Shown here piece by piece: positions 1-12,426 of a DNA stretch of 64,000 nt. The notes beneath the pieces were generated by a model. The model was given only the letters and a program-made list of their open reading frames with translations, was not told the DNA's origin and ran no database searches. Made by a program: the position numbers and the translations under genes. The DNA is taken from IMG/VR virus record IMGVR_UViG_3300017971_000190, positions 1 to 64,000 of that record, one strand, 5' to 3'. Numbering within the stretch: the stretch's first letter is position 1; each line of letters opens with the position of its first letter.

Positions 1-212
1 ACAACTGAAATGTAATTGATGTTTGCCTTTGATATGGCTGAGGCCTACGTTGAGTAGGAGAGTTCTACCGGTGGGGTCGGGTACCGGGTAGACAACTGAA
101 ATGTAATTGATGTTTGCCTTTGATATGGCTGAGGCCTACGTTGAGTAGGAGAGTTCTACCGGTGGGGTCGGGTACCGGGTAGACAACTGAAATGTAATCG
201 ATGTTTGCCTTT
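1..212 (+). repeat. 91-bp tandem repeat, 2 full copies plus a 30-bp partial copy
   Basis: 1-91 equals 92-182; 183-212 repeats the first 30 nt with one mismatch; the unit contains hairpins cctac/gtagg and tctacc..ggtaga. Confidence 0.9.
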
Positions 213-341: not shown

Positions 342-432
342 TGAGGGGCTGATGACGGTCAGAGATTGCGACTTTAAACCACAAGTCGCTAGAATTAATA
401 ACTGTGGGTTCGAGTCCCACCCCCTCGTTCCA
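342..432 (+). tRNA. Aberrant tRNA-like RNA (10-nt anticodon-position loop containing CTTTAAA)
   Basis: Acceptor tgagggg/cccctcg, T-arm gtggg-TTCGAGT-cccac, encoded CCA; helix gcgact/agtcgc has a 10-nt loop. Confidence 0.5.
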
Positions 433-716
433 GCAAGTTCCTAGAACATCTAAGAAGCTGTGATTGTATTGGGTCAGTGGCCTGTGCAGTACACAGTGGA
501 GACGGTTCGTTTAAGGAACGAGCTGCCTTTAGTCGAGATCCCGCGTTGGCGACTAGAGGGTTGGCAGTACCAATGCAGGGGTGCGAGGTGGGTAAGTCGG
601 TCTGGTAGATTTTACCTGTTTGTAATCCAGCGACACCACTTCAATAAATGGGACTAACAGGTCTCAACCATCTTTCGTTGTCACAAGTCGGTTGAGTATT
701 CACAAGATGACAACTA

Positions 717-781
717 GGAGTGAGGACACTAGCTTGAGTGCTTCAACGGTTTCGGCTCAAGTCCATAGCCCTTCTCCGAAA
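717..781 (+). ncRNA. Stem-loop/pseudoknot element (cttgag..ctcaag family)
   Basis: Stem 733-738/756-761; loop tttcgg complementary to downstream ccgaaa 776-781. Confidence 0.4.
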
Positions 782-966
782 AATTGATTGAAAACCGTTT
801 ACGCCTACACGGAGTTGGGGGTTCTACAGTTGTAGGAAGAGCTTAAAAACCCAAAGTAACAGGTGGGGCTACCGGGATGTATCTTTCCCTTTCAGTGTAA
901 GCCTGTTGCGGTAGGGAGAGTGGTGGACACGCTTGCCCCAACCCTCTACCCGAATTTTTCGTTTTT

Positions 967-1233
967 GGTAAATGGAAGGTTGGCCTAAAAGCAGCCATCC
1001 TTTAAAGAGTGAGGCGAAGACCTGTTGCTCGGATTTTTGCTGTGAGAGGCTTGGGTACGGTTAATCTCACAGGTTCCACGCGAGTCAAAAACGTAAAGTC
1101 GCTTTTTACGTAAATAGATTTGGGAGTGGCTCTCCCTAGCGTGCTGAAACAGGAGTACTTTCGGTTAAGTGAGGAGGCACCCCGGAGACGGTAAGGCCGA
1201 ATCCCTCTTTGGCGTAGCAGCACACCATTTACC
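967..1233 (+). ncRNA. 23S rRNA GTPase-associated centre (H43-H44, L11-binding domain) mimic with a 201-nt insertion
   Basis: 975-1010 + 1212-1225 align without gaps to E. coli 23S 1055-1104 (GAAGGTTGGCCTAAAAGCAGCCATCCTTTAAAGAGT|GCGTAGCAGCACAC); closed by a 9-bp stem ggtaaatgg/ccatttacc. Confidence 0.85.
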
Positions 1234-1306
1234 TTTTTCAGCCCCGTACCAAGTGTCCTATGGAGTTCGGGTTTAAATACTCCTCTTGGTACGCATTTTC
1301 AACCTT

Positions 1307-1426
1307 GTGGGTGTACTCAGACTGTGGCTCGCAGAATCTGAGGCAGTAATTGGTAAGAGATGAAGCTAATGAGCTTGACACCTGTAAAATAAGTTGCAGG
1401 GTGACTAAAACTGCTTACCAGCCCAC
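1307..1426 (+). ncRNA. Unidentified ~120-nt structured RNA, copy 2 (family A)
   Basis: Paralog of 214-333; helix changed to tggtaag/cttacca; closed by gtggg/cccac and followed by a T-run. Confidence 0.75.
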
Positions 1427-1514
1427 ATTTTTTGAGTTGCCCCCTAAGCACTGGTCTAACGATCCTGCTTAGGTGATCGGGGAGTGGATGGTACCTGAAG
1501 CTCCCCACTTTTTT

Positions 1515-1601
1515 GGAAGATGAACGGGAAGGCCGGGCATTAGTGCACAGTGTCGTACCGGTTCGACTCCGGTTTGGAAATCCAAGTTCTTGGCATCTTC
1601 C
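1515..1601 (+). ncRNA. tRNA-like RNA with T-arm but rearranged architecture
   Basis: 8-bp closing stem ggaagatg/catcttcc; T-arm accgg-TTCGACT-ccggt followed by an extra hairpin ttgga/tccaa before the 3' strand. Confidence 0.5.
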
Positions 1602-1708
1602 TTGAAAAACCGCCAGAGGAATTACACGTTATAATCTGGCCTCTACAGAGAGTAAAAAATGTGAGGTTGTGAGTGCTTTTCCAAAAACTCTCACCCGACA
1701 TAAGTTGG

Positions 1709-1804
1709 ATTTAGTGTCTTGTGCAGTCATAGATGGGAGGCGTTGAACTCTGGTCACCAGGTTGGAGGGAGCCAACAGTGAAATACCATCCATTGGCATT
1801 AAAT
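1709..1804 (+). ncRNA. 23S rRNA L1 stalk (H76-H78) mimic
   Basis: TGTGCAGTCATAGATGGGAGGCGTTGAA...GGAGCCAACAGTGAAATACCATCC matches 23S ~2109-2179 (UGUGUAGGAUAGGUGGGAGGCUUUGAA...GGAGCCGACCUUGAAAUACCACCC); 10-bp H76-like stem atttagtgtc/ggcattaaat. Confidence 0.85.
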
Positions 1805-1982
1805 TGTATAAATACAACAATTTGTGTTGGGTAATTTTCAGTTGCAACCCCTGGGTTCTGAGGTATTTGCCGGTAGCCTGCAGAACAGGGAAGTCCCGTA
1901 GCCGGATGGGTTTGGTAGTAGAACCTCTGACCCTTTTAATTGAGTCAGTAGCTGTACACTAAGAAAAAACTACCACTTTTTC

Positions 1983-2050
1983 GGAGCCTGTAATTTAAAT
2001 GGAAAAAGAAGCGTTAGCCTATTTCTAGGCTCGAATCCTAGCAGGTTCCT
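1983..2050 (+). tRNA. Degenerate tRNA-like RNA (8-bp acceptor, CTCGAAT T-loop)
   Basis: ggagcctg/caggttcc plus ctagg-CTCGAAT-cctag; D and anticodon arms weak. Confidence 0.4.
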
Positions 2051-2192
2051 TAAAGGGTGTAGTCTCCCTCCTGGGGAAACATTTCCTGGGTTATTTGGCC
2101 ATAAAAGACTACAACGCAAATCGAAAGTGCTTGTTGAATTGATTTGTGTAATCCGAACAAGCAGTTGTGAGTGCTTCTATAAACTCTCATTT

Positions 2193-2296
2193 GTGAGGTT
2201 CCTGGTTGTCCAAGGATGTAAACAGGTGAGTGCTTGGGTGTGTATTCTCGCTCAAGACTGGGCAGGCGAATTGACGCTAGCGAAGCTTGGCCTCAC
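2193..2296 (+). ncRNA. Closed structured RNA
   Basis: gtgagg/cctcac closing stem, internal cttggg/ctcaag stem, followed by a T-run. Confidence 0.4.
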
Positions 2297-2304
2297 ATTT
2301 TTAA

Positions 2305-2414
2305 TCCCTATGATAGAGGATCTACTGATCATTCTAGAACGGTCGGTTGGCAGAAAAAGCTTGTTGGACCCAACTTGTTTTTCTGTTGTCCTGGTTCGAT
2401 CCCAGGATGGGGAA
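2305..2414 (+). tRNA. Aberrant tRNA-like RNA with a very long variable arm and TTCTAGAA loop
   Basis: Acceptor tccctat/atgggga; D-arm taga-gga-tcta; 6-bp stem ctgatc/ggtcgg with a 10-nt loop; variable arm cagaaaaa/tttttctg; T-arm cctgg-TTCGATC-ccagg. Confidence 0.55.
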
Positions 2415-2451
2415 CTAAAGCACTTGGTTGTGAGTGATTCCTAAAACTCTC

Positions 2452-2575
2452 GGTTGTTGGTATACCAGGGTACTAACAATCTTAACACCTGGAAAAGCGT
2501 TTTGGTAGTTATCGTCAATAAATTGCTCTACTTGAGTGACGCCGGGCTCTCCTCAAGTGGTAAAACCCGGCAACC
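2452..2575 (+). ncRNA. Structured RNA with H-type pseudoknot
   Basis: ggttg/caacc ends; stem cttgag 2531/ctcaag 2552; loop gccggg 2541 pairs with cccggc 2566. Confidence 0.55.
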
Positions 2576-2587
2576 TTTTTATTTTTC

Positions 2588-2616
2588 TTGACTTCCTTCT
2601 TTTAGCACAGCATAAT
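2588..2616 (+). promoter_or_regulatory. Sigma70-like promoter
   Basis: TTGACT-17-CATAAT upstream of the ORF at 2649. Confidence 0.55.
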
Positions 2617-2648
2617 AATTGGTGTTAAACAGCTAAAAGGAGTCACAA

Positions 2649-3140
2649 ATGGTGCAGCAACACAAAATCCGAGAAGGCGTCCCCTACACCGATGGTAAAT
2701 CCATCAGAGTTATTGTTGATACTGAAGCTGGGAGTTTTGAGAACGGCACACCCGTGTATTATAGAACCACCCGAGACCTTTTCAAGGAAGTACACGAATG
2801 CTCTTTGGGAGCGTTTGCTCGGTGGGCAACACTGCAACACGAAGAGCTGTCAGATCAAATCGTACTGGCTATTCGCCCAAATAACGGAGCAGATGTTCTC
2901 CCAGACAATCTAGAAACCAGGGTGACAAGGATTTTGAAGACCGAGATTCTGAAAATTGAAGCCGGTTTGGGAACCGTTTCTTTTAATAAAAACGTAATTC
3001 CAGCCAAACTGCTGAGACAGTTGATTCAGGATTACGAAACACTCTACGGCTCAGAAACGCTTAATATCGAAGTAGTTTTCAGTCTTTTCCTTGACGGTGC
3101 GGTGGACCGCACGGAATTCCGGTTTAAGTCTGAACAATAA
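2649..3140 (+). CDS. Hypothetical protein (163 aa)
   Basis: ORF with SD aaaaggag. Confidence 0.75.
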   Translation: MVQQHKIREGVPYTDGKSIRVIVDTEAGSFENGTPVYYRTTRDLFKEVHECSLGAFARWATLQHEELSDQIVLAIRPNNGADVLPDNLETRVTRILKTEILKIEAGLGTVSFNKNVIPAKLLRQLIQDYETLYGSETLNIEVVFSLFLDGAVDRTEFRFKSEQ

Positions 3141-3230
3141 AGGGAGTTCGAGCTAGCGCTTCTTCCTGAGGGGCTTTGGTCCTGAAAATTCTAGCACACA
3201 CACGCTTTTATCAAGAAAGGAGATAGGATT

Positions 3231-3266
3231 ATGAAGCGCATTCCTGTTAACCTAATCAACCTCTAA
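3231..3266 (+). CDS. Putative 11-aa mini-peptide MKRIPVNLINL
   Basis: Strong SD aaaggag upstream of ATG. Confidence 0.3.
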   Translation: MKRIPVNLINL

Positions 3267-3297
3267 CCCTCCCACTTAAAGCTGAGTTAGCACTCAG

Positions 3298-3368
3298 GTC
3301 CGGTTGGTGGACGTACCAGAGGAAGTATTCTGTGTTCGTTGGTACCGACACAGGGTATTAAACCGGAC
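3298..3368 (+). ncRNA. Closed structured RNA
   Basis: gtccggtt/aaccggac stem; internal tattctgtgt/acacagggta helix. Confidence 0.45.
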
Positions 3369-3372
3369 ATCT

Positions 3373-3444
3373 GGCCCCATCGTTCAATGGTTAGGACACA
3401 GGATTTTCATTCCTGAGATCGGGTTTCGACTACCCGTGGGGTCA
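3373..3444 (+). tRNA. tRNA-Glu(TTC)
   Basis: Cloverleaf; anticodon arm cagga-ttTTCat-tcctg; T-stem has T53-A61. Confidence 0.9.
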
Positions 3445-3474
3445 ATAAACTATTAAAAGAAAGGTCATACTACA

Positions 3475-3663
3475 ATGGTGGAAAAGGAAAACAGTTTCTA
3501 CAAAGAACAATTTTCTATTTTGCAAAGGCGTCTTCGTGGTTCCATAGAAGAAGCAAAGAAGGAAGGAGACACGAAGAGAGAGATTGCTCTTCTGAGGGTA
3601 GGTTGTGACGTTGCGAACATTTTGAAGGGTGTGAACATAAATTACAACCCTCCTGGTTACTAA
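3475..3663 (+). CDS. Hypothetical protein (62 aa)
   Basis: ORF with SD aaagg between tRNAs. Confidence 0.6.
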   Translation: MVEKENSFYKEQFSILQRRLRGSIEEAKKEGDTKREIALLRVGCDVANILKGVNINYNPPGY

Positions 3664-3670
3664 AAGTTTA

Positions 3671-3743
3671 GGGCTCGTCGTCTAATTGGTAAGGCTCCAA
3701 GCTCATAACTTGGTCATTCGGGTTTCGATCACCCGCGAGCCCA
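3671..3743 (+). tRNA. tRNA with CAT anticodon (Met or Ile2)
   Basis: Cloverleaf; ccaag-ctCATaa-cttgg; G1-C72 paired, so not an initiator; T53-A61. Confidence 0.88.
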
Positions 3744-3826
3744 CTATGTTACTGACTACCTGAGACCGCAGCTCAAAGGTTAGTAGCAGAACACCTCAAT
3801 TAAGTGACGGTAGAACACTGAGGTGT

Positions 3827-3988
3827 GTGCAAGCAGGTACTACCGGGAAACTATTTTCTACCCTGTAACCACGTAGTTCCGAGGAGCACAAAAGAATGAT
3901 CCACCTTTTGTCCCTACCTGGAACTTAGCGTAGTTTCCCGCGTCTTTGGCGAAAGCCGTACTGCGTTGAGGATCAAACCTGCTTGCAC
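3827..3988 (+). ncRNA. ~160-nt multi-helix structured RNA
   Basis: 12-bp closing stem gtgcaagcaggt/acctgcttgcac; nested cgggaaacta/tagtttcccg, agttcc/ggaact, acaaaag/cttttgt, ggc-GAAA-gcc. Confidence 0.65.
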
Positions 3989-4000
3989 TTTTTCTTTTTT

Positions 4001-4082
4001 GCCCACATGGTGGAACAGGTAGACACGCGAATTTTAGGTGTTCGTGGCTAACGCCGTGGGAGTTCGAGTCTCTCTGTGGGCA
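4001..4082 (+). tRNA. tRNA-Leu(TAG)
   Basis: Class II cloverleaf; cgaat-ttTAGgt-gttcg; variable arm; A73. Confidence 0.92.
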
Positions 4083-4217
4083 CTAGGTCATTCTAATTTT
4101 AAGTCCTGGTAATGGTGCTAGGCAAACGTGACAAGCTTTCCATCCTTCACGTTCGAGAAAAGTTAGAATGACCTTAAATTTGTTGGGAGTTTGAGCTAAA
4201 CAAAAGAGGTACTTAAA

Positions 4218-4550
4218 ATGATTTTCACCTATGAGATAAAACGTCACAGTGTGGATTTCCTTTTCGAGGACGGCAGCTTTCATTCAATAGTGGTGGGACA
4301 AGGGCCTGGTTACTGGTACCGAATCATTTCAAAATTGAGAGAGTTGGGAAAAGAGATAAATCCGGAAGACTTTGACCAGGGTATAGAACGTCTATACTAC
4401 GATTACGCCACCGAGGAACTGAGAGGAAAAACAGAAAAGCAGAAAGAATTGGGATACTTTACCTGTCCCCAGTGCAACGTGATTTATCCTTGTCGTTCTT
4501 TCAAATATCAAAATCCTTGCGACAACTGTCGTTATGTAAAAATTACCTAG
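4218..4550 (+). CDS. Hypothetical protein, C-terminal CxxC..CxxC Zn ribbon
   Basis: ORF with SD gaggt. Confidence 0.7.
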   Translation: MIFTYEIKRHSVDFLFEDGSFHSIVVGQGPGYWYRIISKLRELGKEINPEDFDQGIERLYYDYATEELRGKTEKQKELGYFTCPQCNVIYPCRSFKYQNPCDNCRYVKIT

Positions 4551-4639
4551 TCACTTCGTGGTTAGGAGTGGGGCAATGGAATTGAGAAACCCCCTAGAGG
4601 TTATTGGGCAAAAAAGAAAGCAGGAAAGATAGATTAATA

Positions 4640-4700
4640 GTTCACATGGTAGTTTAGGTACCAGCGGGAAACCGTGTAGGTTCGAGTCCTACTGTGGGCA
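4640..4700 (+). tRNA. D-armless 61-nt derivative of tRNA-Leu(TAG)
   Basis: Acceptor gttcaca/tgtgggc, TTTAGGT retained, variable hairpin gcgg/ccgt, T-arm gtagg-TTCGAGT-cctac; the 3' end matches that of 4001-4082. Confidence 0.65.
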
Positions 4701-4703
4701 CTA

Positions 4704-4874
4704 GTTGGTAGTTCTGGGAGACCTTGGTGAAACACTCCATGGGAACCCACGGTAAAAACGAGACGTGGTAGGTTGTGTAGGTAACTACAGAGCCCTTCTA
4801 TCTAGTTACTCCTTGAGGGTAACGGGGGTAGTCGGATCTTGTTTTTAGAAACAAGGCCCACCTGAACTACCAAC
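4704..4874 (+). ncRNA. ~170-nt structured RNA
   Basis: 11-bp closing stem gttggtagttc/gaactaccaac with several internal hairpins. Confidence 0.6.
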
Positions 4875-5059
4875 AACTTCTTCCTAAGCACTTCGTGTTT
4901 GGGAGTGGGGCACTGGCATTTTAAAGTCCAACTCCATGTGGTTAGGGCAAACCAGTTCAAGACTTGGGCCTTTTGGCTAGCCCAGATGTATTTCTGATTG
5001 CCGACAAGTTACAGGCTGGTTGATACCAATTACCACGAAAGAAAGAGCTAGCCACTATG

Positions 5060-5144
5060 GGAAGGATGACCGAGCGGCTGAAGGTACACGCCTGCTAAGC
5101 GTGCGTAGGGAAACCTACCGAGGGTTCGAATCCCTCTCCTTCCG
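5060..5144 (+). tRNA. tRNA-Ser(GCT)
   Basis: Class II cloverleaf; cacgc-ctGCTaa-gcgtg; G73. Confidence 0.95.
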
Positions 5145-5248
5145 ACGCAGTTGGCCCCGCTGCACATCCTATCGAGAATAATTACCACAGATGTGTGTAC
5201 ACAAAGATGCTAGGATCTTTATTTGTGGTGGTTATTCTAGGGGCAATT

Positions 5249-5378
5249 GGCAGAGTGGCGAAACGAAAAGAGGCCCATACTAGTTAACCTCTTTCTTTGG
5301 TAAACGCGCGGTAACTCCGTGATTGGTCAATCAGTTAACTGGTTCACTATCTTCCAGGTTCAAATCCTGGCTCTGTCA
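5249..5378 (+). tRNA. tRNA-like RNA with a hairpin inserted in the D-loop and a degenerate anticodon arm
   Basis: ggcagag/ctctgtc; Leu/Ser-type D-arm tggcgaaac..tggtaaacgc split by aaagagg/cctcttt; T-arm ccagg-TTCAAAT-cctgg. Confidence 0.55.
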
Positions 5379-5461
5379 AGATGCTATCGCATACACTGCC
5401 TTCAAAAAGTGTATTGACAAATTAAAAAATGTTGTCACAAGACTACTAGGAGGTATTAATC

Positions 5462-5632
5462 ATGGAAAGACTTATTTATCGCTTTATTCCTAACGTTGAG
5501 ACCTTAATTGAGCAATACGAGTTGGAAGGTTTCGAGGTGCGGGGATACAGTGAGTACAGTTCTGACGGGATTCCTAGGGTGGCTGAGATGGTCAAGTGGG
5601 TTTCTGATAAACCGTCTCAAGAAAAGGAATGA
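5462..5632 (+). CDS. Hypothetical protein (56 aa; below the ORF-track cutoff)
   Basis: SD aggaggt, ATG..TGA open frame. Confidence 0.65.
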   Translation: MERLIYRFIPNVETLIEQYELEGFEVRGYSEYSSDGIPRVAEMVKWVSDKPSQEKE

Positions 5633-5657
5633 TTTTTGATTTTCTTCTCTTTCTTTT

Positions 5658-5732
5658 CGGGGAATAACTCAGTCTGGTAGAGTGCCTGCTTTGGGAGCAG
5701 GAAGTTCGCAGGTTCGAATCCTGTTTCCCCGA
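5658..5732 (+). tRNA. tRNA-Pro(TGG)
   Basis: Cloverleaf; C1-G72; cctgc-ttTGGga-gcagg. Confidence 0.95.
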
Positions 5733-5798
5733 TTAAGTTTATTTTTCAAAGTACACGAAAAATAAACTACCTCACTGGTACAGAGGTTAAAGTACTGT

Positions 5799-5959
5799 GG
5801 ACAAGTGTTGTGCAGAGGGTAGCACAGAGAGTAAGCTAACGAAAAGCGAAACCTGCCGTGCGAGAAGAGCAGGTCCACGGTGTAATCGGAATGCCTCTAG
5901 TGTGGTGCACCACAGCTAGTTTTAATGCCAATGAGAGGTTCGATTCCTCTCCTTGTCCA
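5799..5959 (+). ncRNA. tRNA-like termini enclosing a ~125-nt pseudoknotted insert
   Basis: ggacaag/cttgtcc plus T-arm gagagg-TTCGATT-cctctc; acctgc/gcaggt stem whose loop ccgtg pairs with cacgg. Confidence 0.55.
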
Positions 5960-5981
5960 AATGTTGGGTTGGTACTTTACC

Positions 5982-6180
5982 AACGACAACAGCTTTCTTC
6001 GGGAGCCCGGAAGAAAGGCTTAACCAGCGCCAGTGAGCTTCAATGGGTCGTGCACACACCGCGTTGAAGATGACTCTGGGGTAGTAGGAAGGTGCACAGA
6101 ACGGCAAACTAGGCTTTTCCTAGGTTGGCTTCTAGGCACCGATCCCTCCTTCAGTGGTGTGTGGGGCTTGGTTGTTCGTT
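5982..6180 (+). ncRNA. ~200-nt structured RNA with GTGCAC loop
   Basis: acgacaac/gttgttcgt ends; agctttcttc/gaagaaaggct hairpin; cttcaa/ttgaag stem; gtgcac at 6050 and 6092. Confidence 0.5.
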
Positions 6181-6219
6181 CACACAGGGCTCAATTTTAA
6201 AAATTATTAAAGGTGAAAA

Positions 6220-6417
6220 ATGAAGCTAACTAAAAAACAAGAAAAATTGGTAAAAGAGGTTATTGGAGACGGCACCGATTTTCCAAAATTTACAAACGAC
6301 CCTTATGTTAATCACAGAGTAGACATGCTTGTTTGTGACTGTCCACCTTGGGAGGAGTTGAGTAAGGAAGAGCAAGATTTGTATTTTGAGGAAGTAGAAG
6401 CTTCTAAAATGGAATAA
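6220..6417 (+). CDS. Hypothetical protein (65 aa)
   Basis: ORF with SD aaggtg. Confidence 0.65.
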   Translation: MKLTKKQEKLVKEVIGDGTDFPKFTNDPYVNHRVDMLVCDCPPWEELSKEEQDLYFEEVEASKME

Positions 6418-6438
6418 TTATTAATAGTATTGTTTCTT

Positions 6439-6510
6439 TGAGGCGTAGGCAAACGGTAAGCCACGAATTTTTGGTGTTCGGCATTGGAGGTTCGAATCCT
6501 CCCGCCTCAA
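6439..6510 (+). tRNA. tRNA-Gln(TTG)
   Basis: Cloverleaf; T1-A72; cgaat-ttTTGgt-gttcg. Confidence 0.88.
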
Positions 6511-6512
6511 AA

Positions 6513-6662
6513 ATGAAAAAAGAAAAACCTTTGAAGGATTTACTGCCGAATCCATGTTGTTGCAGTTTTCCCATGGAACCATTGAAAGTAACAAAACCAC
6601 TTAGAGAAAAATTGTGGAAGTGTCTCAAGTGTGGTAAGTTGATCTATAAATACAAAAACTAG
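6513..6662 (+). CDS. Small Cys-rich hypothetical protein (49 aa)
   Basis: ATG after tRNA-Gln; CC..CxxC. Confidence 0.45.
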   Translation: MKKEKPLKDLLPNPCCCSFPMEPLKVTKPLREKLWKCLKCGKLIYKYKN

Positions 6663-6665
6663 TGC

Positions 6666-6755
6666 GGAGTGTATAGTGTTTAAATGGCAACACGGCTAGT
6701 GGCTAACGGGTCATACCTGCCAGGCAAAAGTGGGTTCAAATCCTGCAACACTCCA
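6666..6755 (+). tRNA. Degenerate tRNA-like RNA
   Basis: ggagtgt/acactcc, D-arm gtgtt/aacac, TTCAAAT loop; anticodon arm poorly paired. Confidence 0.4.
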
Positions 6756-6824
6756 TATAATGTTTAGCGAGAGACAAGCAGTTGGGCTCTCGTGGCGACT
6801 TTGTAGAGGGTGTACAATTTTTCT

Positions 6825-6897
6825 GGGCGATTAACTCAGTTGGCAGAGTGCAATCTTTACGCGGTTGAAGTCACAGGTTCAAACCCTGTATCGCCCA
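6825..6897 (+). tRNA. tRNA-Val(TAC)
   Basis: Cloverleaf; caatc-ttTACgc-ggttg. Confidence 0.9.
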
Positions 6898-6905
6898 AAA
6901 AGAAG

Positions 6906-6934
6906 TTGACTTTACCACTACTCTGTGTTAGCCT
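6906..6934 (+). promoter_or_regulatory. Sigma70-like promoter
   Basis: TTGACT-17-TAGCCT with TG upstream of the -10. Confidence 0.45.
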
Positions 6935-7072
6935 TTTCTTAATCCGTGAGAGATCAGGCTCAACTGCTCTCACGGGGTTGTCAACGGGGTGGGCCAATCC
7001 CCTGACGGCGGGAGCTGCGTTTCCTTTTGGAAGCAGTCTCCCGTTTTAATTTTAGAAAGGAAACAAAGCACC

Positions 7073-7273
7073 ATGGTAGAAGAAAAAGAAACCTACGAAG
7101 CTATCAATTTTGGTTGGGACGGTGATGATTTTGTAACCGAAGATGTTACAGGCAAAATTCGTCGCTATCACGGTGCCAAAATTACCGACGTTAAGCGAGA
7201 GTGTTCTGTGGAAGTTCAAGACGGTAAAGTGATTGGACACTTTTCGTTTCAATTACCGAAAAAGAAAGGCTAA
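7073..7273 (+). CDS. Hypothetical protein
   Basis: SD aaagg; start re-assigned to ATG 7073. Confidence 0.65.
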   Translation: MVEEKETYEAINFGWDGDDFVTEDVTGKIRRYHGAKITDVKRECSVEVQDGKVIGHFSFQLPKKKG

Positions 7274-7277
7274 GAGA

Positions 7278-7565
7278 ATGACTATGGTAAAAGAACACGA
7301 ACTTAAGTATGGGGTAGATGGTTGCCTCTTAACCTGGCAAAACCCTTTTCCTGAAGAAGTAACCTGTGCTTGTTGTGGAAAAGAAGGTGCACGTTTAGCT
7401 TTTGTTCTACAAGAATCAGGCAAAAAGGAGCACGCTTGTAATTTATATCAAAACGATCCGGATGGAGAGGGATTTTGGGTGCACGATTCAGCTGCTTTTG
7501 CAGTTTATTTGTGCAGAGATATTAATTGCCCTGAAAAAGCTACCGCTAAGTGGAATCAAGCTTAA
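7278..7565 (+). CDS. Hypothetical Cys-containing protein
   Basis: ORF directly after the previous gene. Confidence 0.65.
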   Translation: MTMVKEHELKYGVDGCLLTWQNPFPEEVTCACCGKEGARLAFVLQESGKKEHACNLYQNDPDGEGFWVHDSAAFAVYLCRDINCPEKATAKWNQA

Positions 7566-7574
7566 AATATTTTT

Positions 7575-7647
7575 GGGTCCTTAGCTCAGCTGGTAGAGCA
7601 CCGGACTTTTAATCCGTAGGTCTTCGGTTCAAACCCGAAAGGACTCA
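7575..7647 (+). tRNA. tRNA-Lys(TTT)
   Basis: Cloverleaf; ccgga-ctTTTaa-tccgt. Confidence 0.92.
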
Positions 7648-7699
7648 TTAGTTCACCCATCAGAATAGTAAGTTTTAAGGAGAAAGATCATGAAGAAGA

Positions 7700-11303: not shown

Positions 11304-11627
11304 GTGTGTTATTTTCAGGACATTGCTGTAAAAAAAGTTGTAGTAGAAGTCATTTCCGAGCTGGTGGGAAAGCGTAAGCGCTTCACCGGTTGGGAAGTGA
11401 ATCAAAAATTACAAAACCGCAAAGGCTTTGCTCACCTTCCCCCACCCTGGCAGATCAGCTCCTATGTACGGGAACTGTTTAATGGGCATAACAGTGCTTT
11501 TTCAGGTTATGCCTGTTATCCAGTTGATGGAGGCCCCTTGCTCTATTTCCCAATTCCGTACTATGTGAGAAATCATGTCGAAAAAATCCAAAAAGAAATC
11601 CAAACGGAAGGCCAAACCGAAAAGTAA
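11304..11627 (+). CDS. Hypothetical protein
   Basis: SD aaagg, GTG start. Confidence 0.6.
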   Translation: MCYFQDIAVKKVVVEVISELVGKRKRFTGWEVNQKLQNRKGFAHLPPPWQISSYVRELFNGHNSAFSGYACYPVDGGPLLYFPIPYYVRNHVEKIQKEIQTEGQTEK

Positions 11628-12426
11628 CCCTTCTGTTTCGATGCCCAGTGTTCAGGAACTTTTTGGTTCCAGTTGTCGTTATCGCCTTAGCAGTTCTTTT
11701 CGTGGACCTCAATTAGAAGGTTACGAATTCTTATGTGCTTTCGAAAACAAAGTACACTCTTACCACACCCCCACAATGCAGAAGCTTGGCAATATTAAAC
11801 AAGCTTGGCATGGTACCAATAAGGCTGCACTTAAAAGCATTGCTGTGGATGGATTACTCACGCCTTTTCAGCGTCGAAAGCGAGATCGCTGGACTAGCAT
11901 ACACGGTATGTTTGGACCAGGAATTTATTTAGCTCCTAACATTGAAAAAGCGGCTATGTTCGCATGGCAGCATAAGCATTTGAAGTTTGTTCTTCAATGC
12001 TATGTTGCTTTGGGAAAACCTCATTTTGCTACTCAAACAGGAAACTATTACGAAACAGCTGAAATGGAAGACAAGCATAGTGTCATAGGTGGAAGAGGAT
12101 CACTGACTGGAGCTTGGGGTGGTAGACTCTTAAACGAAGAGTGGGTAATTTTCGATAATCAACAAGCTACTGTAGACATGGTACTCGTGTACAGATGCGT
12201 GGAAACTCCTAAGGCTACCCCATTTCGAGGCTCGATTGGACGACGATTTTATAACAGTAGTAGAGAACCACAAGGTGTTGTTCGTTACCACCCTTGCAAA
12301 CGAAATGGCAAGCTTTGTCGCAATGCTTTTGGCTCTGGTGGCTGTGTGGAAAAAGGTATAACTACTGGAGCGAGTGCCTTTTCAGATTACTGCAGAGATT
12401 ATCAAGTATCCTTGATTCACAAATAA
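11575..12426 (+). CDS. PARP-like (H-Y-E class) ADP-ribosyltransferase domain protein
   Basis: WHGT, GMFGPGIYLA, VALGK, NEEWVIF motifs. Confidence 0.8.
   Translation: MSKKSKKKSKRKAKPKSNPSVSMPSVQELFGSSCRYRLSSSFRGPQLEGYEFLCAFENKVHSYHTPTMQKLGNIKQAWHGTNKAALKSIAVDGLLTPFQRRKRDRWTSIHGMFGPGIYLAPNIEKAAMFAWQHKHLKFVLQCYVALGKPHFATQTGNYYETAEMEDKHSVIGGRGSLTGAWGGRLLNEEWVIFDNQQATVDMVLVYRCVETPKATPFRGSIGRRFYNSSREPQGVVRYHPCKRNGKLCRNAFGSGGCVEKGITTGASAFSDYCRDYQVSLIHK

Follow-up and report, generated by a model that had tools for sequence, protein, structure and literature searches.

The L1 stalk and the GTPase-associated center (GAC) of 23S rRNA form the bases of the two lateral stalks of the 50S subunit, where the rRNA contacts the tRNA elbow at exit and at entry, the H43 loop of the GAC touching the elbow of the incoming tRNA; both sites bind proteins through which the adjacent rplKA and rplJL operons are autoregulated. 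Phage tRNA clusters, for their part, contain or adjoin noncoding RNAs such as T4 species 1 and 2, GOLLD and ROOL, whose function is mostly unknown, and we know of no report of any of them as a copy of an rRNA domain. Away from the ribosome, the uL1 site of 23S rRNA is mimicked by the operators of rplK-rplA and of archaeal L1 mRNAs, which are short (a 36-nt fragment is enough), lie in the 5′ untranslated regions of ribosomal protein genes and bind uL1 more weakly than rRNA does; domain I of uL1 recognizes a structural motif that is invariant in the rRNA and mRNA sites, and isolated 55-nt fragments of the L1 stalk have a high affinity for L1, more than 10 times that of the mRNA operator (PMC2175363). 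The double T-loop module has a core of six residues, AGNNA...UGNNA, with an extra U in T-loop 1 (Lehmann et al. 2013, PMC3664808), and a platform, 2112:2169, that is almost always purine:purine and on which the G19-C56 elbow pair of tRNA stacks (PMC3664808); G2112-A2169 is the pair seen to stack on it (PMC5309774). Finally, the jumbo cyanophage PhiMa05 encodes both uL11 and uL1 (PMC13157829).

The DNA that we analyzed (the window) is the first 64 kb of the 221,679-bp IMG/VR viral contig IMGVR_UViG_3300017971_000190. Among its genes are a DNA polymerase and a topoisomerase II for replication, both of T4 type, and near its start lies an L1-stalk-like element, in which a known RNA domain occurs as an autonomous unit in a viral genome, a setting new for it. 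The secondary structure of the element is that of the bacterial L1 stalk (H76-H78; approximately 2093-2196 in E. coli), the two have in common the invariant nucleotides AG..AUA, GGGAG.C, GAA, GAG.C and UG..AUACC as well as the double T-loop module with its purine platform, and most phage copies match the 82-nt core of the stalk exactly in length. The phage element differs from the stalk in lying outside rRNA, encoded by phages in tRNA islands, in its shortened H76, closed by unrelated sequence, and in missing the three-way junction with H75 and H79; in the window copy, moreover, T-loop 1 is one base longer and H77 is of a rare type. Like the uL1 operators it is an off-ribosome mimic of the 23S uL1 site, but it keeps the whole head, has no ribosomal protein gene downstream and would be expected to bind with rRNA-like affinity (PMC2175363). 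The AGNNA...UGNNA core and the purine:purine platform are common to the phage element and the described double T-loop modules; those of T-box and RNase P RNAs are analogous, built on other scaffolds without H78, whereas the phage element is a direct homologue of the ribosomal copy (PMC3664808). With T4 species 1 and 2, GOLLD and ROOL it has in common that it is a noncoding RNA among tRNA genes, a comparison made through Rfam 15 only. PhiMa05 and the window phage bear on the same two ribosomal stalks, the former with protein partners and the latter with RNA partners. The features of the locus are collected in Table 1.

Table 1. Features of the L1-stalk-like element, of its companion and of the surrounding small-RNA island (window coordinates unless a contig is named)
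Feature	Position	Strand	Remarks
Tandem repeat, 91 bp, 2.3 copies	1-212		At the very start of the contig
Two paralogous structured RNAs, ~125-130 nt	214-340, 1307-1432	+	82% identity over 71 nt
Small-RNA island around the L1-like element	343-7648	+	tRNA genes and T-arm elements on one strand
T-arm-bearing elements not called as tRNAs, at least 8	343-426, ~1557, ~2022, ~2390, 4640-4701, ~5355, ~5935, ~6731	+	
tRNA genes, 8	3372-7648	+	Same strand as the L1-like element
Hairpin motif GTTGTGAGTG..AAACTCTC, 3 copies	1666-1696, 2164-2194, 2427-2457	+	
Free-standing mimic of the 23S GAC (end of H42, H43, H44) with inserted domain, 267 nt	967-1233	+	
GAC mimic, closing helix	967-975 with 1225-1233	+	H42-like, covarying
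GAC mimic, H43 hairpin	~976-1002	+	Loop almost identical to rRNA
GAC mimic, H44 hairpin	~1210-1222	+	GUA(A/G)(U/C)A-type loop
Free-standing L1-stalk-like RNA domain, ~98 nt	1708-1805	+	blastn, covariance model R1, MFE closing stem
H76-like closing stem, 5′ strand	1708-1718	+	Pairs with 1795-1805; 11 bp including 3 G.U
5′ junction with T-loop 1	1719-1731	+	g1723 = G2112 (platform purine)
T-loop 1 residues	A1725 G1726 ... A1731	+	= A2114 G2115 ... A2119
H77, 5′ strand GAUGG	1732-1736	+	Pairs with CCAUC 1786-1790
H78	1739-1773	+	Consensus structure and pair counts
H78 base pairs	GGC 1739-1741 with GCC 1771-1773	+	
H78 kink-turn strands	GUUGAA 1742-1747, GGA 1768-1770	+	
H78 distal 8-bp hairpin	1748-1755 with 1760-1767	+	Loop ACCA 1756-1759
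3′ junction with T-loop 2	1774-1785	+	a1781 = A2169 (platform purine)
T-loop 2 residues	u1779 g1780 a1781 a1782 a1783	+	= U2167 G2168 A2169 A2170 A2171
H77, 3′ strand CCAUC	1786-1790	+	
H76-like closing stem, 3′ strand	1795-1805	+	Pairs with 1708-1718
L1-like element followed by tRNA-Arg(acg)	L071 5997-6100; L317 4597-4802; L331 261-467		Three related large phages

An earlier note, made from the sequence of the window, had proposed a copy of H76-H78 with intact T-loop segments, and that proposal is upheld by 23S homology, by covariation and by a covariance model. With blastn-short, positions 1720-1794 align to 2111-2184 of an E. coli 23S gene at 74.7% identity over 75 nt (E = 4e-9), as against a best E value of 0.046 in 20 shuffles of the 9-kb region; the gene copy used for this numbering differs slightly from the reference, and its 2111-2184 correspond approximately to 2109-2182 of the standard numbering, as derived from the H77 positions. 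The query is too diverged for blastn with a word size of 11, which missed it against E. coli genomes. Covariance model R1 matches 1712-1794 with 81.8 bits (E ~1e-18). Only 75 nt of the element align to 23S, blastn against 23S gave no rRNA similarity in the flanks of 1708-1805, and the element does not belong to a full-length 23S gene. Searches of Rfam 15, at the gathering thresholds and with E values up to 10, returned no family for the element and no LSU match over it; a c-di-GMP-II match at this place (21.8 bits, E = 0.72, gathering score 53.5) is due to chance. An rRNA gene, an ORF and a visible assembly error are excluded as explanations of 1708-1805, and we are highly confident that this stretch is a selected mimic of the L1 stalk.

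The segments on which the earlier note had built its case are where it placed them, AUAGAUGGGAG at 1729-1739 and GUGAAAUACCAUCC at 1778-1791, as are the H78 kink-turn flanks GGAGGCGUUGAA (1736-1747) and GGAGCC (1768-1773). Its 10-bp H76-like stem, spanning 1709-1804, agrees with the closing stem in Table 1, for which the duplex dG is -12.1 (z -2.4) and whose 5′ strand shows no relation in sequence to rRNA H76. The G-C to A-U covariation that it reported is likewise real and lies at the second pair of H77, where E. coli has GGUGG/CCACC and the window GAUGG/CCAUC. Few real 23S rRNAs have the window variant: a scan of one genome for each of 185,579 species met it only in Brachyspira and a few Patescibacteria, so the window copy has diverged by compensatory change and is no plain or recent duplicate of the rRNA of a typical host. 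T-loop 1 holds a one-base insertion, u1727, that sets the copy apart from rRNA and from all other phage copies. Folding the single sequence thermodynamically does no better than folding shuffles (z -0.9), and it is homology and covariation that support its structure.

Pattern scans of IMG/VR, followed by searches with covariance model R1, recovered stand-alone copies in 22 further viral contigs, which with the window makes 23, a lower bound on the size of the family since the searches were seeded with patterns. The contigs are mostly large, 13 of them spanning 104-412 kb. To count as stand-alone, each locus had its flanks (800 nt on either side) compared with 23S; family loci align to 23S over a core of 65-90 nt or nowhere, while L004, L312, L330 and probably L336 are real rRNA genes by this test and were set aside. 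One member of the family, L003, runs into the end of its contig and has 93% identity to enterobacterial rRNA, and a chimeric join is conceivable there. In every copy the core is directly abutted by a closing stem of its own, of non-rRNA sequence. A metagenome scan with a CAGUGA-variant pattern added no stand-alone copy, 118 of the 120 loci being real 23S by the flank test and the remaining two rRNA-like as well.

The family comprises 19 distinct phage sequences, and when these are aligned with no rRNA among them the H77/H78 structure is paired in 97.0% of cells, with changes on both sides in 13 of the 16 pairs. None of 500 column shuffles reached the observed pairing values, and sliding the partners by one to three columns lowered pairing to 36-53%. 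H77, a 5-bp helix with flanking AUAG and AUACC strands, is 100% paired, with both-side changes at four of its five pairs; the middle pair at the base of H78 is A-U in 10 copies, G-C in eight and C-G in one, and along the H78 strands GAA is invariant and GGAG nearly so. This alignment was fitted to model R1, but a nine-sequence alignment based on MAFFT, which included two rRNAs, led to the same conclusion. By its pattern of substitution, this is a family that selection, both purifying and compensatory, has maintained in many large phages.

The same 19 copies bear on what the element might bind. The earlier note had expected the loop residues to be conserved in homologues, and the six residues of the double T-loop core (A2114, G2115, A2119, U2167, G2168 and A2171), together with the extra U2118, are invariant in all 19; the window meets the AGNNA...UGNNA core with one extra base inside T-loop 1. 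The platform 2112:2169 is G:A in 11 copies, A:G in four, G:G in one, A:A in one and U:A in two, that is, purine:purine in 17 of 19, including g1723:a1781 in the window, and the copies with A:G in place of G:A suggest that a tertiary pair has covaried. About as conserved as the T-loops are the residues of H77 and the base of H78 (GGGAG.C / GAG.C, GAA), which, from L1-RNA crystal structures, we take to be the part common to the rRNA and mRNA uL1 sites. The T-loop module and its platform, both strictly kept, are too large for a 36-nt uL1 operator, which argues that elbow docking may also be under selection; a pure uL1 site of the kind found in mRNA operators would not need these features, and docking thus gains indirect support.

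The surroundings of the family members are varied. Within the retrieved loci, same-strand tRNAs lie near the element in 10 of the 23 contigs, and in about half no tRNA was found in the retrieved stretch. In L071, a contig of 412 kb, the element ends 4 nt before tRNA-Arg(acg), and in L317 and L331 the same tRNA follows some 50 nt downstream. No protein neighbor is conserved across the family beyond closely related phages, and no defense or anti-defense gene is conserved beside the element. In the window, the ORF that starts at 2649 has no relatives in IMG/VR outside its own contig. Near and distant BLAST searches of 50,697 phage records gave no match to the window element; for other members the only matches were contaminating records of real 23S and a piece of MZ092003.1 (Paenibacillus phage Pd_22F, 82900-84008) that is probably host rDNA rather than a mimic, its GAC-like and L1-like matches standing about 1.05 kb apart, as in real 23S, near the end of the record. 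Among the phage records searched we found no cultured phage with an L1 mimic.

The window contains a second rRNA-derived element, unseen in the earlier note, that alters the overall picture. The blast search that found the L1-like piece also matched 976-1008 to the H43 hairpin of 23S, and these two, GAC-like and L1-like, are the only rRNA-like pieces in 9 kb; copies of the sarcin-ricin loop, of 16S and of 5S were looked for in the window and none was present. Besides the parts listed in Table 1 the GAC mimic has a J43/44 strand, and its inserted domain measures 100-300 nt. Rfam, searched with 930-1260 alone, gave the GAC piece only a 16-bit local match to the archaeal LSU model. Across the family there are 35 consensus pairs, 17 of them with compensatory change, and an exact-pattern scan found the GAC core in at least 55 IMG/VR viral contigs, all 55 stand-alone, with about 30-33 nt alone aligning to 23S. 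Genes for tRNA, mostly in clusters, occur in 48 of 54 GAC-like loci; in two of these (L143, 4045-4349, and L186, 5018-5322) a tmRNA lies within the tRNA cluster of the GAC-like element.

The GAC mimic is also found in cultured phages: pf16, Astolliot, Milchi, UNO-G1W1, Aeromonas phage 4_4572, XacN1 and GAP32. It sits unannotated between tRNA genes in pf16, Astolliot, UNO-G1W1 and 4_4572, and in XacN1 it adjoins a gene for a 2′-5′ RNA ligase. Model R1 found no match to the L1 element at these GAC-mimic loci, and the family-specific insertion of the GAC mimic is common to phages without an L1 mimic. The two do occur together in L331, a 105-kb contig unrelated to that of the window, where an L1-like element (386-467) and a GAC-like element (~4245) lie on the minus strand, which is the tRNA strand. 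Short contigs matching 977-1011 at 86-99x depth in both sequencing runs, with one mismatch and the upstream continuation GACAGCCAGG, are real 23S of abundant community bacteria that have k-mers in common with the GAC mimic.

Both elements belong to a region rich in small RNAs. Positions 1-2126 contain no ORF of 80 aa or more, those in 900-1900 are all 73 aa or less and random-looking, and the G+C content of the first 2.6 kb is 0.47-0.49, against 0.40 in the coding part. T-arm-bearing, tRNA-like elements in the same cluster had been noticed earlier, and they are indeed there; that at 343-426 folds into a cloverleaf with an 8-nt anticodon loop (z -3.2), and some of the others have just a T-arm and an acceptor-like stem. 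The two paralogous RNAs each have a GUGGGU/ACCCAC closing stem followed by a U-run, and neither matches Rfam. The first copy of the hairpin motif lies about 12 nt upstream of the L1-like element; the motif may be a promoter, a processing signal or a small RNA. A scan for promoters and terminators gave matches no commoner than in shuffles. In each of two public DNA runs a single contig covers 169-6000 without differences, though the near-identical depths of the two runs mean that they are perhaps not independent; no assembly error is visible at the L1-like element, and alternative joins in the assemblies affect the tandem repeat at 1-212. A few kilobases downstream of the island, an ORF on the plus strand (11575-12426) has a PARP-type ADP-ribosyltransferase catalytic domain (Pfam PF00644, E = 6e-13).

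We propose that the L1-like RNA is a trans-acting decoy that imitates the L1 stalk away from the ribosome and engages host uL1, tRNA elbows or both, a reading that we would put at even chances. Its position and strand, and the neighboring tRNA 5′ ends, where RNase P would cleave, suggest that it would be transcribed and trimmed with the tRNAs into a stable small RNA. The tight binding of L1 by 55-nt stalk fragments makes high-affinity binding of host uL1 by H77/H78, as on rRNA, the simplest prediction; from the conservation of the H77/H78 core and from the fragment data (PMC2175363) the phage RNA probably does bind uL1, a view we hold with some confidence. The purine platform of the T-loops could dock the elbows of tRNAs or of the neighboring tRNA-like RNAs, an activity that we hold about as likely as not. 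Titration of free uL1 would relieve its repression of rplK-rplA mRNA, and capture of deacylated tRNA off the ribosome may occur together with this or in its place. The mimic would probably work alongside the one at 967-1233, which copies the base of the uL11/uL10 stalk. More tentatively, and with the odds somewhat against it, the two stalk-base mimics might amount to a ribosome in pieces, in which RNAs made from tRNA islands would form soluble pseudo-stalks, assembled with host uL1 and uL11/uL10-L12 or left as bare RNA, and would sequester tRNAs, translation factors or stalk proteins, thereby reprogramming host translation or the autoregulation of ribosomal proteins.

The strongest of the alternatives is that the element docks tRNA elbows without uL1, as a pure RNA module like the apex of T-box Stem I or J11/12-J12/13 of RNase P, and serves as a chaperone of folding or processing, as a cap against tRNA-targeting defense nucleases or as the core of an RNA-only assembly. 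The invariant double T-loop core and the G:A to A:G swap in the platform are what such a module would show (PMC3664808), and the reading also draws on the position in a tRNA island with at least eight T-arm elements in the window, on the place of the element directly 5′ of tRNA-Arg(acg) in L071, L317 and L331, and on the contact that the H43 loop copied in its companion makes with the elbow of the incoming tRNA on the ribosome. However, conservation is as strong in H78 and in the GGGAG/GAGCC core that contacts uL1 as in the T-loops, stacking on an elbow is weak by itself unless there is a second contact, and in half of the family loci no tRNA was seen nearby. Elbow docking needs no H78, which T-box and RNase P RNAs do without (PMC3664808). 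We consider this reading unlikely as it stands; binding of uL1 is at least as likely as an RNA-only complex with the neighboring tRNA-like RNAs.

A second alternative, which we judge improbable, has the two mimics soak up factors of the host or of competitors that attack exposed sites in rRNA (ADP-ribosyltransferases and other rRNA-modifying toxins, nucleases, thiopeptide-like inhibitors) and so protect the ribosomes while infection proceeds, by analogy with phage tRNAs that replace or evade cleaved host tRNAs. It would account for the copying of exactly two solvent-exposed stalk bases and nothing else, for H43 and H44 loops that are almost identical to rRNA across more than 55 phages, and for the location in tRNA islands, which in other phages counter tRNA-targeting defenses. 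We know of no toxin aimed at the L1 stalk, however, stoichiometric decoys are inefficient against enzymes, and the lack of a conserved defense or anti-defense neighbor beside the L1-like element also counts against it.

The element might instead be a cis-acting leader, through which uL1 would regulate a downstream phage gene as it does at rplK-rplA. The L1 operators mimic the same rRNA site (PMC2175363), and a same-strand ORF, the first 3′ of the element, does start downstream, at 2649. That start is removed from the element by about 850 nt and several structured elements. The family has no conserved downstream gene, several members being followed by a tRNA, and no ribosomal protein gene was present among the 41 ORFs tested in the window, so that the element does not lie in the 5′ untranslated region of a ribosomal protein operon. 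The T-loop module, too large for the 36-nt fragment that suffices as an mRNA operator (PMC2175363), is kept as well. Context thus largely refutes this reading, which we hold very improbable.

That the element is non-functional debris, a fragment of host 23S rDNA captured or mis-assembled, is the least probable explanation of all: real 23S pieces do exist in phage and viral collections (L004, L312, L330, Pd_22F), and the GAC-like and L1-like pieces stand in 23S order, but the 470 nt between them show no rRNA similarity, every member has precise domain boundaries and a new closing stem, the contigs are continuous in both runs, the insertion in the GAC mimic is family-specific and is also found in phages without an L1 mimic, and the compensatory changes in 13 of 16 pairs and the recurrence in 23 contigs from unrelated phages contradict it.

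Full-text searches of the literature, including a survey of 10,000 candidate phage RNAs, and Rfam 15 gave no description of phage mimics of the L1 stalk or the GAC, although absence there is no proof. It is a realistic possibility that these two mimics constitute a new class of RNA for viral takeover. Because the GAC mimic occurs in cultured phages of Pseudomonas, Aeromonas and Xanthomonas, that half of the proposal can be examined directly in deletion mutants. With the L1 mimic, structural and single-molecule studies gain a compact L1-stalk RNA already minimized by nature, and the double T-loop module that docks tRNA elbows gains its fourth biological context. Should the two prove to be functional decoys, they would explain part of the unannotated space in phage tRNA clusters and offer a natural test of the autonomy of the L1-stalk and GAC domains. 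They would also add a new layer to host takeover, with phages manipulating the ribosome through copies of rRNA domains besides proteins and tRNAs.
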